From assembly GCA_020891255.1 (NCBI GenBank), contig BQFW01000008.1, positions 434,001-498,000 on the forward strand: a DNA stretch of 64,000 nucleotides, written 5' to 3'. The position numbers and the translations under genes were made by a program. The stretch is from Entomortierella parvispora E1425 (Eukaryota; Fungi; Mortierellomycota). The notes below the pieces were generated by a model. That model made no database searches and was not told where the DNA came from. It was given only the letters and a program-made list of their open reading frames with translations. Position 1 is the stretch's first letter. Each line of letters begins with the position of its first letter. Below are positions 32,027 through 38,925 of this stretch, one piece after another.

Positions 32027-33717
32027 CTAGATTCGAATGACTTCAATGTCCACCTCTTCTATGACATCCTTTGCCTCCTGGCCATAAAAGTACACGAGAG
32101 CCGGGCGAACCTTGGCCAATCGAATGTTGAGAACTGGGTGAGTCGGCTCAACAACATTGCTGGGTGATCCCACAACCCGTCGTTTCTCAGGCGACTCGGT
32201 CCAGAGGAGGGCAGTCAAGCCTCCCTTCGCATGTTCTTTCAAGTCGTGTCTGAATGAGATTTGGTGTTGTGAAGAAGAGAGCCCACTGAGAGTGTAGCAG
32301 GTGTGGTAATAATCCGCACCCCTATTTGAGCGAAAAACAACATATGGTCAACTTCTAGTTCTACTTCGATAAAAGAAAGCCGCAACAAGAAGATATTGAC
32401 TGCTTACGTGGAGGGCTTGTCTCGAAGACCACCTGTCTTGGATTGGCATGCTACAAGGGTATATTCTTGCAAGGCATCTGCCATGACAAACAAGGTATCC
32501 AGGTGAATTTCAAGCTTCTTACGAATGGTTGCATTTGAACATAGACAACGTTTGCTTACCTCGATCATAAATGAATTCCAATGGGTCTTGTTCACCTCCA
32601 GCTTCTTCTAGCATCTTGCCCAAGATAGGGAACATGCCTCCCATCCAGAAAGAATAGCAGCCGTCAACTAACTTGTTGGTCCTGCCTTGGAATCCACCCT
32701 CCAGCGACATCTGTCTCCGAGTACTCCAGCGAGCAAGGGTCTCCAAGTTCAAGACGTCCGTCCGTCCCAAAAGTTCCAATGCTGCCAATCCACAGAATGC
32801 ATAGCCCCCATGTGCCTCCACTCCTGGGTATCCTCCAATTCCTCCTTCATATGTCTGACACCTTCCCACAAATTCGGCCACACCTTCTGTCAGTTGCGGC
32901 GTCAAGATGTTTGTGATCGTGGCGGCAGACAAGGCGCAATAGCACCCTCGGACATCAATCTCGCCACCTTCCATAACCCTGAACGAACCATCCGGTTCTT
33001 TGCATCTCAAGAGGAATTCCAGCAGTGTTGTTCGGTTAATCAAAGACAGAGCCTCTTCCGTTCCAATGATAGCCAGAGCATTGACAGCTGCATAGGTCGT
33101 GGCGATGTGAGAAGCCTGGCCAGGTCCGCCACCAAATCCTCCAGTGGGCGATTGCATCTGTCGTAAGGTTGAGATACATCTCTGTGCGATCCTCTCCGGG
33201 ATCTTGTAGCCCAACAAGTCGAGGGCGTGAAGAATCCAGTAACAGAGCCAGGGCTTGCTAGCATCCAAAGCGGCCCAATAGCCGGGCAAATGGTCCAAAG
33301 CTCCGAGGACATATTTGACGTGGCGAAGTTTTCGAAGCTCAATTCTAGATGGTTTCCAGGGCGAGGGGAGGAAGAGAAAAGAAAGGGTCGGTTGGTGAGG
33401 CGATGGATAGTCCCCTCTGATAAAGAAAGACAGTAAGTTTTCGACACTCATACCCTTCGACTGGTTTGTTCATGTCTTCGTCTGTGTAAGGAAAAAACTC
33501 GCGAGCGACCCCCTCTTCAGTCTCGGTCTAGGAGAGTTGCAATAAAAGAAGTCCAGTCAGCCATATGTTGCATGCTTACATGCATTGAGCGCGTCAGGCA
33601 CGCTGCTTTCCATTGGAGAGAAGGGAGGCTAACCTGAATCTCGGAGGAATGAGTTTCAATGCCATCATTATTGTAGCCGTAGGAGTTGAGCGGCTCCTTG
33701 CGTTTGAGGACACCCAT
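32027..33717 (-). CDS. RAM1: protein farnesyltransferase beta subunit
   Basis: ALDASKPWLCYWILHALDLL, GGFGGGPGQASHIATTYAAV, GEIDVRGCYCA, EAHGGYAFC, EGGFQGRTNKLVDGCYSFW. First exon MGVLKRKE...DGIETHSSEIQ. Confidence 0.95.
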
Positions 33718-33897
33718 GATGTAGGAGAAAAGGAGGAGTTGACGTGGGGAGGAAAGAGAATGGAGGAAGGAAAGAAGAGCGGGAGGGTGAACTTGAAAAT
33801 TGCACGTGACCTGATCGCGCTTTTTTTTTTTTTTTTTTTTTTTTTTTGCTTTCTTCTCCTCACTCTCATTCCCCCTCTCTTACTACCTTCTAGTTCA

Positions 33898-36056
33898 ATG
33901 AACAGCCCTTCATCGAACCAATCCACAGGAATGAACTGTCAAACCCACGTCGCTTTTCAGGAAGAGCCTGCCCTCTCAACATTAGCGACATTCCGAGCAG
34001 AGATCGCGTCTCATTTGTCTCGAGTGCTACAGCGACCCGTCGAGGACCTCTTACCCCTTATTCAGAACGAAACAAAAGCCAGAGCCGGAGGCGGTGCCAA
34101 GGGTCACAGTCTCTTCTCAGTACCAGTTCAACGGCTTTTCATCTCTGCCCCGCGCACCTCATCTAGCAGGAAACAAAAGGAAGGCGCGAGCGAAAGCATT
34201 GATGACCGAAACAAAGGCAACGACAACCCTGGTCTCGATCGAGAAAGTCTCCTGGAACAGCTCCTAGTGCTCCCAGAGGACACCAAACTACTTGCCAAGG
34301 TGTCTCTCGGCGCAAACAAAAGTCTGTTAATGTTTGAACCGGACCGCATGGAACTTATCCGACGCACCTGCCTCGCCATCACTCGCGACCTGTCTGATCT
34401 GCCAGATGGCCAAAGTCAGAAACAACCAGAAGATGCCCAGAAGACTGTCCTTGGAAAAAGAGGTCGAGCCAAGGATTCACTCGTGATTGTGAACGCTCTA
34501 TCACTCTCACAGACCGAAGGCGTATACTCGAATCTGCGACGGGCGGCCATCGCAGGGTTCGTTAGCCGACTTATGAATCTGCGAGCAAAGAGGACGGCTT
34601 CGCTGATCGTTGGTCAAGAACTGGAAGAGGCGCGCATCGGCATTGCGTCAGGTACGTGAGAGGATGGCCAATTAAATAAATGGAAGGATGATAGCTCACC
34701 CTTTCTCACCTGTGAATCGTATAGGGCATACGATCCACATTTTGGATGGAGAGGCATCACTGGACCAATATAACGATTTGCTGGGTTTAGGTAGCCACCA
34801 GGAGAGTAACAGCGGACGGGAAGCAGAAGGGCACATTGCTGGATCCGAGTGGGCGTTTGAGAAGATGAGGATGGCCTTGCAGTCTAATCCTGCTCTAGTG
34901 GTACGCGGCGAGGAAGGTTCTTCCTTTGTAGATTTGACCGCGCATGGCCTTGGCCAGGCCAAGGTCTTTTCAACGGACCCTTCGTCCATGGCATTTGAAA
35001 GCTCGACCCTCATTACGCGGACTATGGTTCAATTGGCGTATCATTTAAAAGAGCACAAGGAGAGCTGTACCCGGTATATTTGGATCCTGCCAGAGGGCCG
35101 AAAGCACTTTGCAGACCAGGTGCTACGCCTGATTGAGATCATATTCAACAGCCCTTCTGAGGAGCTGCTACCGAATGGCGATGCTGCGACCGATAAGATT
35201 GAGCCATGTATCAAGGATAAGAAGACAAGACACCAAGGAGCCGGAACAGGATTGTGGACAAATCTCGTTGAGCTTGTGTTGTATGACCCGTCGTTTGGCC
35301 CAGATCTTTGGAATGGTGCTACGCCGTTCGAGAACAAAAGTATAGGCGGTCTGATCGACTACGCCACTGTTCGGATGAAGGAAGTTGTTGTTGAGAACCG
35401 AGGCGATCCTCAGGGCATGGATGACGAAGACATGTACGGCGATGACGAAGGAGAGAAGCCTGCCTTGGATGAAGCCTCCCTCTCAAGGATGGCCACGATA
35501 CTGAGTACTTCAGCATTAGTTGTGGCCAGTGTAGGGACGCGCTTGCGGAAGAAAATCCAATTGGATTTGACAAAGATCTTGGATGGGAAGGGCAATTCTG
35601 GCGTATTTCTGCAGTATGTCCAGTCAAGGCTATGCGGGTAAGCTGTCTGTCATCCTCCATTCCTATCGCCCCCTTTTTTTTTCTATTTTTTGCTAATTCA
35701 CTATTCGTACTTCTCTCAGAATTGAGCGTAACTCGCAGGTTCAATTCAACCCGGAGGCGGATCTGTCGCTTCTTCAAAAGATACCCGAGGCGTACGCCTT
35801 AGCAAAGGTTCTGTCAGAATGGGAGGATCTTGTGTCCTCCTCTTCCAGCACTGTATCGACAACTCTGGATCCAAGTCCGTTAGTGCTCTATCTGTTTAAT
35901 TTGGCCGCCGAAGTTGGACAAGCGAATCGGACCATGAGAGTCAAGGGCATGAAACAGGAGGTAGCAGAGGCACGGTGGTTATTGTTCTGGTGCGCAAAAA
36001 AAGTACTGGAAGAAGGTCTTTGGCTTTTGGGTCTAGAGTCTGTAGGAATGATGTGA
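33898..36056 (+). CDS. degenerate arginyl-tRNA synthetase paralog with intact DALR anticodon-binding domain (~667 aa)
   Basis: Exons 33898-34651, 34725-35637 and 35720-36056 total 2004 nt in frame. Colinear similarity to yeast-type ArgRS (GNSGVFLQYVQSRL, PSPLVLYLFNLA, ARWLL..AKKVLEEGLWLLGL), but HIGH, GDWG and MSTRKG are absent. Confidence 0.8.
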
Positions 36057-36141: not shown

Positions 36142-38925
36142 TCATGCTCTAAAGACATGCAGAAGCTTGACAATATACTCTCGGCAGATGGGGCAGGTTC
36201 GAGGACCATCCATGATTTTCTTGCCACTAAAGAGAAGAGGGAAGATAGAAAGGCCGAGAATAATTAGAGTCTAAAGAACGCGCGCACCCCCGGTAACAAA
36301 CAAAAAAAAAAGAGTCGCACAATGCACGCGGGTCTTACCAGTCCATGCAAGTCGACATATGATTGCAATTGAGCATCACGCAATTGAGTGAAGCATCCAA
36401 ACAAATCTTGCACAGATTATCGTCGCCGTTCATAGATTGAGAATCCATACCGTGCGCAGATGAAGTGGGCGACTTTTCCCCGCCTCGCGCGGCAGCAGCG
36501 GCAGCAGCAGCAGCCTCACTGTCTTCCTTCATCTTTTGGGCCGCCTGCTCCGCTTTTGTTTCGGAAATCAGTTGCTTCAATCGGCCCACCAGATCGGTCT
36601 TTTCCACGACTCCAATATAAGACACGCAATTGGTATCCAAAAGTGATTTCAGGACCTTGACCGAGAGCGTTGAGGTATCCACATCCAAAGAAATGATCTC
36701 GTCCAGTGTCAAGACTGCTGTGCTGTGTGTGGTTTGAGGGCCACGGGAAGACACTCGGGGTCGAGAGGAAGAGGAGGAAGTTGGTGGAGGTCGTGGCGGT
36801 GGAGGAGAGGCACGTGCAGGGTCTGGATTTGTCCCTCCTGTTTGACGTGGGTCGGGAGTTTCGCGATGAGTACGCGGATGGTTCGGCTCTGGGGAAGGCG
36901 GGTGCTGATAGGCGTACTCTTGCCGATCCTGAGGTGATCTGAACCCCGAGGAACCTGGAGTTGAGCTGGGCTGTGAGGTTGGCGTAGGTGCCGGCCGAGG
37001 TGCTGTTTGAGGGGTCGGTTGAGGTCGACTCTGGGACTGTGGCGGCGGCGGATTCGCCGCTGCTGGTTTCTTAGCAGTTCTTGGCGACGGCTTAGGTGAC
37101 GGTTTGGGAGAGGGTTGAGGGGAAGATTGACCGCCCGGACGATCGCTGCTGCTGCTGGCTGACGCTTGAGGTCGATCTGAATTATACATTGTACTTGGTC
37201 GATAAGAAGAGGAGGAATAGCTGCTCGACGCACTATTAGACCCATAGGAAGATGTTGGTCGAGAGGGTTGTGCAGGTTGAGGCTGCGGTTGCGGCTGAGA
37301 TTGCATCGGAGGCACTGTTTGCTGCTGCTGATACTGATGCTGCTGCTGGTGCTGCTGTTGGTGTTGGTACTGAGTCTGATGCTGAGGAGGGTATTGTGGA
37401 TACGGCTGCTGTGGCTGTGGCTGAGGCTGAGCCTGCGGGAAAGTTGGACTTGGCTGGCCAGGGAACGGCTGATATGGTGGATATGCTTGATATGGTTGTT
37501 GACTAAACGTTTGTTGTGGATACGCCTGTTGCTGAGGTGGGAATGGTTGATATGGATGAGGAGCTGGCCCATTCTGCGCGTTTGGATATGTGCCAAAGAA
37601 CGACGGTATAGGTCCTGAATGAGGGGATGTGGTAGGGTACTGCTGGTATCCATAGGGCATCCCTTGTGGTGGAGTGTATGGAGGAGAGTTTGGCACTGGC
37701 ATTGCCGTAGGAAAAGGTGTCGATGGGATATAAGGAGGCGTATATGTTGCTCCTGGAGGGGTGGCCGGGAAGGGATTGTAAACTGGTCGATGTCCTCCTG
37801 CAGTGGGTTGAGGCTGTGAACTCCATGCTCTTCCATCCGCAGGTTTTTGTGGCGCCGGTTGCGCTTGAGGAGGTGCCTGAGGTTTCGGTTGTTGTTGTTG
37901 CTTGTACTGCTGTGATCGCGGGCGTTCGGATTGAGTTGCACCACTCGACTGGGGCTTTGGAGCGTTCGGAGGAGTCGCTGTTGGCCCAGCTGAGGTCTTT
38001 CCTTGAGATTGCCCTGGCTGCGATGTTTTGGATTTTCGGGGCGACAGTGGTGTGCCGTCGTTGCCAAAAAGCTTTGAGAAGAATTTATCCATCGATCCCC
38101 GGTCGGCTTCCTGCCACATCCCTCCCACATTCGAGAATTCCTCGTAGAAAGTGGTGGTGTTTTCCACAGTATCTGGCATGTTCTCCCTAAAGTGTGTTTC
38201 TGAAGCCTCTGAGAGGGGACGGTTGCTCTGGATTGCATCGACAAGATCTGTTTATGAGGAGGGTGAAAGCAGCGGTAAGAAAGCCAGATCCAAGAACGGC
38301 ACAGGCTACAGTTGAATTGTCCTTACCCTGTTTCTCTAGCATGCCAAGGATCGAGATGTTATAGGCGGTCAAGTATCCTTTTAAAGTCCTGATATTCAGT
38401 TGAAGCAGCGACGCCTTGTCCATCTTGCAGACTAGAGTGGGGCAAGTAGATAAAACCAGGTTAAACAGCACGGTCTTTGAATTTTTCTTTCATCCCTTCA
38501 AGGACTCCTACCTTGCAGAAAGTGCGCGCAATAGGCACAGCATCGAACAGGCCTAGAGATAGGGACCTTTTCTTGTTAGAAGCATTCTACAACGCGACAA
38601 ACGTGGCGACCACCCCTGCACTAAAAGCGATCCCTCCCTGAAGCCCCTTCCTTGTACCTGAGATGTCCAAAGTGGGGTAAAGGTGTCTTGTATTTGCTGC
38701 AGCTCTCACAGACAACAAGTCCTGTGCAGGTTTGGAAAGAGCATTAGACATTCGCTTCTCTAATCTCATTCAGCATTACTGACATGCGCGTGAGGAGATG
38801 AGGGAGTGCCTACCGCAATTGTAGCAATTCTTCTTGTTGGTAAAGATCCCAAAGTTCTTCCCGCACCTGTCACAGTCGTTCGAGTCAACTTTCAGAGAGG
38901 GAGGCGAGCGCCTCGTTGTGGTCAT
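36142..38925 (-). CDS. FYVE-like + SAP-like + RING E3 ubiquitin ligase (RNF34/RFFL-like)
   Basis: N-terminal CDRC..KKNCYNCG|LVVCESC..RCCAYC zinc finger, two LxxxLKxxL...GxxEKxDLV repeats, a Q/P-rich linker, and RING CKICLD..CVMLNCNHMSTCMDC|GKKI..CPICREYIVKLLHVFRA*. Confidence 0.82.

Follow-up and report, generated by a model that had tools for sequence, protein, structure and literature searches.

What does a gene annotated as an arginyl-tRNA synthetase (ArgRS) do once the ATP- and arginine-binding residues of its product have been almost entirely lost? The question is raised by a gene of the soil fungus Entomortierella parvispora E1425, located at 33898-36056 (+) of a 64,000-nucleotide stretch (contig BQFW01000008.1, positions 434,001 to 498,000), hereafter the window, whose numbering is used throughout. 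We consider it probable that the product of this gene is a full-length but catalytically dead paralogue of the fungal (yeast-type) ArgRS, which has been kept by selection across Mortierellaceae beside the canonical ArgRS and serves as a non-enzymatic tRNA-Arg factor. To our knowledge, examples of dead synthetase paralogues with retained tRNA recognition are rare, and DALRD3, whose origin is unclear, is the only ArgRS-derived one that has been studied. The histidyl-tRNA synthetase (HisRS)-like domain of GCN2, the seryl-tRNA synthetase (SerRS)-like insect protein SLIMP and bacterial HisZ are dead aminoacyl-tRNA synthetase paralogues in which binding of tRNA or of a partner persists; like the protein described here, they retain the synthetase scaffold for recognition after loss of the chemistry. 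They derive, as far as we know, from other parent synthetases in other lineages, and none from ArgRS.

The gene has three exons and an intact reading frame, with 667 codons counted from the first ATG. GenBank entry GJJ73454.1 (656 aa, Entomortierella parvispora, "arginyl-tRNA synthetase") is identical to the spliced product when translation begins at the second ATG (33931) and matches the three exons with 100% identity throughout (tblastn). An earlier reading of this DNA made from the letters alone (the sequence-only reading) had described an intact 667-codon gene from an early-diverging fungus; the gene model agrees with it, and the host belongs to Mortierellomycota. The full-length analyses were performed with GJJ73454.1, and the exons were also searched one by one. 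Scans of the window for Rfam families and tRNAs gave no matches. The features of the gene are as follows:

33898..34651 (+), exon 1: Add-1-like N-terminal domain, disordered loop bearing the GKRxR patch peculiar to the family, strand beta-1 and what is left of the HIGH region (tblastn 100% to GJJ73454.1, hhalign, model)
34495..34542 (+), remnant of the HIGH segment (SSPNIAKPFHAGHLR): window letters ALSLSQTEGVYSNLRR (hmmsearch sub-alignment to yeast ArgRS residues 162-178, hhalign)
34652..34724 (+), intron 1: 73 nt, GTACGT...TAG, phase 1
34725..35637 (+), exon 2: remainder of the degenerate Rossmann-fold core and beginning of the anticodon-binding domain (phmmer, hhalign)
35297..35317 (+), remnant of the GMSTRKG (KMSKS-equivalent) loop: GPDLWNG (BLAST to a canonical ArgRS fragment, hhalign, column table)
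35591..35637 (+), conserved GNSGVFLQYVQSRLCG motif: entry to the anticodon-binding domain, with G, G, L, Q and R present throughout the family wherever a residue is aligned
35638..35719 (+), intron 2: 82 nt, GTAAGC...CAG, phase 2, position and phase common to canonical Mucoromycota ArgRS genes
35720..36056 (+), exon 3: DALR anticodon-binding domain and ArgRS-typical C-terminal Met, then the stop codon (Pfam DALR_1 6.1e-12, yeast ArgRS 1bs2 2.8e-8)

Two GenBank models of the family are without the eight residues YVxSRLCG just before intron 2 (alignment columns 687-694), which most likely reflects a wrongly chosen splice donor and not a real deletion.

The gene product is a full-length ArgRS derivative, in which an Add-1 N-terminal domain, a Rossmann core and a DALR domain follow one another. 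A simple hidden Markov model (HMM) search recognized only the C-terminus (DALR_1, PF05746; 8.7e-14), whereas descent from ArgRS over the whole length is established because both profile-profile and fold comparisons see it. The family profile aligned with 18 canonical yeast-type ArgRS with a probability of 100 and an E-value of 1e-61 over 500 columns (hhalign), from the first Add-1 helix, where the alignment begins at residue 16, to the C-terminal Met. Against the PDB, the 14-member family profile matched yeast ArgRS (1BS2) at 5.2e-29 and human RARS1 at 1e-8, with no chain matching as DALRD3, and profile sub-alignments placed the family segment LRRTvLTGFvAR on yeast 162-HLRSTIIGGFLANL. One of the 15 phmmer matches of exon 2 among 1.84 billion proteins was a canonical ArgRS catalytic fragment (E 5.5e-6). 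In the AlphaFold model (predicted local distance difference test, pLDDT, 65; predicted template modelling score, pTM, 0.70), four parallel core strands are retained and the Add-1 domain is folded. The top 20 PDB matches of this model in Foldseek were all ArgRS, the best being the yeast ArgRS-tRNA(Arg) complex (1f7u_A; E 8.6e-17, template modelling (TM) scores 0.61/0.66), and structure searches of the ESM Atlas matched full-length Mucoromycota ArgRS (TM 0.64-0.67). The colinearity with yeast-type ArgRS claimed by the sequence-only reading is thus confirmed by the 500 aligned columns and by the Foldseek matches.

Conservation is distributed very unequally along this scaffold. We mapped onto the family the columns conserved in at least 90% of the 18 canonical ArgRS and counted a column as kept when its residue occurs in at least 70% of the family. 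The catalytic domain keeps 16 of 93 such columns, and 19 more have no aligned residue, versus 15 of 24 kept in the anticodon-binding (DALR) domain, which bears out the earlier picture of a dismantled active site beside a preserved anticodon-binding domain. In the SSPNIAKPFHxGH block (SSPN(I/P)AKPFHxGH), each position is kept in at most five of 13 members (aligned window segment ALSLSQTEGVYSN). The block reads LSLSQTEGVYSN in the window, where one Ser alone is left of the invariants S, S, P, N, I, A, K, P, F, H, G, and H. The NYLGDWG block is deleted, the family having no residue aligned to it, and the first half of the catalytic core has lost about 70-90 residues compared with canonical ArgRS. 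The arginine-binding Y-x-TRD is equally degraded (Y 0/14, T 2/14, R 1/14, D 0/14), the conserved Gln of strand beta-4 is replaced by Arg or Lys in 14/14 members, and only the Gly of the GMSTR loop survives (M 0/14, S 0/14, T 1/14, R 0/14). No variation is seen within the family in the GxxGxxLQYxxSRL motif, in several DALR helices or at the terminal Met. The roles of the ATP- and arginine-binding residues are those known from yeast ArgRS structures; these residues are almost entirely lost, and we infer that the protein has no aminoacylation activity.

Most of these details had been anticipated by the sequence-only reading. It gave the HIGH segment as ALSLSQTEGVYSNLRR in place of SSPNIAKPFHAGHLR, on which hmmsearch sub-alignment, hhalign and the column table agree, and it rightly described the NYLGDWG region as replaced or shortened and the GNSGVFLQYVQSRL motif and DALR domain as kept. 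It was also right about the loss of the KMSKS equivalent but misplaced it, reading GATPFENK where BLAST and hhalign give GPDLWNG, six residues upstream. Relative to canonical yeast-type ArgRS (S. cerevisiae YDR341C/MSR1; PDB 1BS2, 1F7U), the protein thus shares the fold, the domain order, the best sequence and structure matches, the GxxGxxLQYxxSRL motif, the C-terminal Met and, with the Mucoromycota orthologues, one intron, but is devoid of the HIGH segment, the NYLGDWG block, the arginine-binding Y, D, and Q and the MSTR loop.

Could the protein nevertheless be an ArgRS that has diverged strongly but is still active, such as one dedicated to mitochondria? Its full-length fold and its automatic annotation as "arginyl-tRNA synthetase" in all species would suit such an enzyme, which we nonetheless regard as very improbable. 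Hardly any member retains the HIGH, arginine-binding (Y, D, Q) or MSTR residues, and the NYLGDWG block is missing altogether; moreover, the Pfam catalytic domain tRNA-synt_1d (PF00750) gave no match in any of the 14 family members, even at an E-value of 10. A mitochondrial enzyme is argued against because the N-termini begin at the first Add-1 helix, with no presequence seen. In addition, a canonical ArgRS (PF00750 and PF05746) coexists with the dead copy in E. beljakovae, E. lignicola, and A. wolfii. The naming of all GenBank copies as arginyl-tRNA synthetases is therefore better seen as a systematic misannotation.

As a side observation on the canonical genes, most Mucorales have two canonical ArgRS paralogues falling into two well-supported clades, and the three sampled Mortierellaceae have one canonical ArgRS and the dead copy. 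The canonical yeast-type ArgRS gene of an Endogonales-like fungus (Logan SRR32476553, locus L001), 63% identical to that of Jimgerdemannia, carries an acidic core insertion at about the same place as the insertion of the dead family.

The dead copy has been found only in Mortierellaceae, in which it is widespread. Homologues of the middle exon were found in this family only (phmmer, 1.84 billion representatives), and gene models are available from at least 12 species and at least six genera, the dead copy occurring in Entomortierella, Gryganskiella, Mortierella, Podila, Actinomortierella, Lunasporangiospora, and Haplosporangium. Two further family searches, with 2 and 5 matches, were swamped by low-complexity words and have no bearing on distribution. 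The model from Lunasporangiospora selenospora (1595 aa) joins the dead ArgRS (DALR_1 at 470-586) to a SNF2 helicase / RING finger protein; it probably represents two adjacent genes merged by annotation.

Such a distribution bears on the possibility that the gene is a decaying duplicate, a young pseudogene left intact by chance. The dead copy does evolve two to three times faster than the canonical ArgRS between the same species (tree branch lengths), as a decaying gene might. However, the ratio of non-synonymous to synonymous substitution rates (dN/dS) amounts to 0.235 in one close species pair and 0.26 in another, and in the more diverged of the two it falls to 0.06 in the DALR part; the part preceding DALR gives 0.22-0.28. 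Pooling both pairs yields 31 synonymous versus 26 non-synonymous changes, and neutrality is rejected (p 3e-7). Comparisons between genera show saturation at synonymous sites (proportion of synonymous differences, pS, 0.76-0.80) while the non-synonymous proportion (pN) is only 0.31-0.34 overall and 0.17-0.21 in DALR. Because of this dN/dS of about 0.25, the pooled test and the comparison of saturated pS with pN, the dead copy is under relaxed yet clear constraint, that is, purifying selection. The sequence-only reading had named a dN/dS near 1, together with no expression, as the sign of decay. The same three results across pairs and genera rule out a decaying duplicate, which the number of species and genera with gene models and the conservation of intron 2 in 3/3 gene models checked also make exceedingly improbable.

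Where did the duplicate come from? The sequence-only reading had left the choice between a DALRD3 orthologue and an independent origin, of which the second is favored and the first disfavored, because homologues were found only in Mortierellaceae, because the maximum-likelihood (ML) tree nests the dead copies among fungal ArgRS, and because an intron is common with canonical Mucoromycota ArgRS. In the tree (LG+C20, 34 rows), the dead clade (100/100) lies inside a clade of Glomeromycota, Mortierellaceae and Mucorales ArgRS (100/97), away from the Zoopagomycota, Ascomycota, and Amoebozoa sequences. In approximately unbiased (AU) tests, joining it to the canonical clade of Mortierellaceae was acceptable (p 0.33). 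The codon and phase of intron 2 (before IER, phase 2) match those in the canonical ArgRS of A. wolfii, Phycomyces nitens and the Endogonales-like fungus, and this intron is absent from the ArgRS genes of Neoconidiobolus and Tieghemostelium. An independent, lineage-specific duplication of an ArgRS of the Mucoromycota lineage is highly probable, having most likely occurred at the DNA level and independently of animal DALRD3.

Within the dead clade, the E. parvispora copy pairs with that of Gryganskiella (100/98), not with those of E. lignicola or E. beljakovae; current Entomortierella taxonomy conflicts with either the genus assignment or the history of the gene.

Several points weigh against a dead tRNA-Arg factor of separate fungal origin. 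The tree contained no animal RARS1, RARS2 or DALRD3 sequence, the stem branch of the dead clade is very long (2.45), and the AU tests likewise accepted a position of this clade outside all canonical Mucoromycota sequences (p 0.136). A language-model feature search of the ESM Atlas ranked DALRD3 clusters first (0.93-0.95, 192-196 shared features), with canonical ArgRS at 0.90. A search with the canonical ArgRS exon of the Endogonales-like fungus did not recover the canonical enzyme of E. parvispora among the best 120 of 1249 matches, with a length window applied; separate canonical genes are seen in the three related Mortierellaceae, and for E. parvispora the presence of one rests on ArgRS being essential. 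Lastly, the former active-site region contains new residues that are invariant in the family (DEN-x-Y before LRR, RYxWxVPxGRxxFxxQVL, GxDxWK, and VENRG), which may indicate a role beyond passive tRNA binding.

Alternatively, the protein might be a true orthologue of animal DALRD3, derived from an ArgRS-derived adaptor of the opisthokont ancestor that was lost in the other sampled fungi, and it would then act with a Trm140/METTL2 homologue for 3-methylcytidine at position 32 (m3C32) of tRNA-Arg. The clusters ranked first include arthropod ones, the AU test accepts the outside position, and in both proteins the ArgRS-type DALR domain at the C-terminus follows an N-terminal part that is non-catalytic and lacks the synthetase motifs; both are also presumed to select tRNA-Arg and not to charge it. 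This very state, a DALR domain with a dead core, may simply be what the DALRD3-first ranking reflects. Orthology appears decidedly unlikely given the restriction to Mortierellaceae among 1.84 billion representatives, the nesting of the dead clade among Mucoromycota ArgRS and the common intron 2, which together point to a separate duplication from fungal ArgRS. By shape, the nearest structures in the ESM Atlas are full-length canonical ArgRS, with no DALRD3 model among the 30 nearest. The precomputed Pfam annotation of two proteins, GJJ73454.1 among them, lists DALR_1 (PF05746) alone and not DALR_N (PF26758); a second copy of Pfam also gave no match, but as it may predate PF26758 this carries no weight. 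Unlike DALRD3, the Mortierellaceae protein has an ArgRS architecture that can still be recognized as a whole by profile and fold, with a retained Add-1 domain, and it exceeds the DALRD3 clusters in length by about 100 residues (656-667 versus 544-570 aa).

DALRD3 homologues have been stated to be known only in vertebrates (Lentini et al., PMC7237682). The ESM Atlas holds DALRD3-named clusters in Arthropoda (22 DALR_1-only at ≥0.9), at odds with that statement. In the literature searched, we found nothing on fungal DALRD3-like proteins.

The new invariant residues lend themselves to another explanation, in which the protein was neofunctionalised: the former active-site cleft would bind a new ligand or partner, DALR would serve for another RNA or as a scaffold, and tRNA-Arg would not be the relevant ligand. 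Family-specific invariant residues standing where the ArgRS catalytic motifs were, in a pre-DALR part still under selection (dN/dS 0.22-0.28), are in line with this scheme. These residues, together with the family-specific GKRxR patch of the disordered loop, could form a partner interface or, alternatively, a nuclear localization signal. Yet the best-conserved part of the protein is the anticodon-binding module, including the ArgRS-typical GxxGxxLQY, R and C-terminal Met, and the D-loop-binding Add-1 fold is retained as well, so that neofunctionalisation away from tRNA-Arg seems unlikely.

We therefore return to a dead ArgRS that still handles tRNA-Arg. Judging from the motifs kept, it probably binds tRNA-Arg for a non-enzymatic purpose. 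In the proposed scenario, an ArgRS gene of the Mucoromycota lineage would have been duplicated, and the duplicate would have lost its ATP and arginine chemistry while keeping the ArgRS scaffold. Its Add-1 and DALR modules would still dock on tRNA-Arg, and the dead copy would serve as a specificity or handling factor for this tRNA that does not charge it. Most likely, this factor would be an adaptor, handing particular tRNA-Arg species over to a partner enzyme in the way that DALRD3 serves METTL2. Animal DALRD3 partners METTL2 for m3C32 on tRNA-Arg-CCU/UCU, and the yeast SerRS-Trm140 pair provides a related synthetase-methyltransferase precedent (PMC7237682). By analogy, an adaptor role of the Trm140/METTL2 type is plausible, although an adaptor specifically for m3C32 modification of tRNA-Arg can be put forward only tentatively. 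Equally speculative would be its wider form, in which the Mortierellaceae duplicate recruits an m3C32 methyltransferase or another enzyme of the anticodon loop, convergently with vertebrate DALRD3.

The genomic neighbourhood was also considered, since the sequence-only reading had the gene share a 180-bp spacer with RAM1. This is correct: exon 1 of RAM1 starts at 33717 (-) and the dead ArgRS gene at 33898. The features on this side are as follows:

32519..33451 (-), main exon of RAM1: prenyltransferase alpha-alpha toroid (Pfam Prenyltrans 2.9e-89)
33634..33717 (-), exon 1 of RAM1 (farnesyltransferase beta): MGVLKRKEPLNSYGYNNDGIETHSSEIQ (translation; orthologous first exon in Gryganskiella)
33718..33897 (no strand), divergent intergenic region between RAM1 and the dead ArgRS gene: 180 bp, with a run of about 28 T at 33821-33848

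The head-to-head pair also occurs in Gryganskiella cystojenkinii, with a 218-bp spacer (locus L008, 4783-5000). It was not found at five other loci (E. lignicola, Haplosporangium, two Mortierella sp., and M. alpina), where the upstream neighbour is a co-oriented gene of about 1200 aa. A functional meaning of the linkage was rejected, the pair being common to Gryganskiella only and not to these five loci; the shared RAM1 promoter is a local feature and not part of the system. Downstream, a convergent gene (36335-38179, -) encodes a protein very rich in Pro, Gln and Ser, at the end of which a C3HC4 RING finger begins (E 2e-4); its open reading frame is cut by an intron at the 3′ end.

What the finding offers is probably an independent second ArgRS-derived pseudoenzyme, full length and under selection, and thus a natural comparison for how such adaptors arise. 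The family carrying it can be cultured, with Mortierella alpina among its members, and the dead copy gives an entry point to lineage-specific tRNA-Arg biology. If it were indeed an adaptor convergent with DALRD3, evolution would have arrived repeatedly at a dead synthetase serving as specificity factor.

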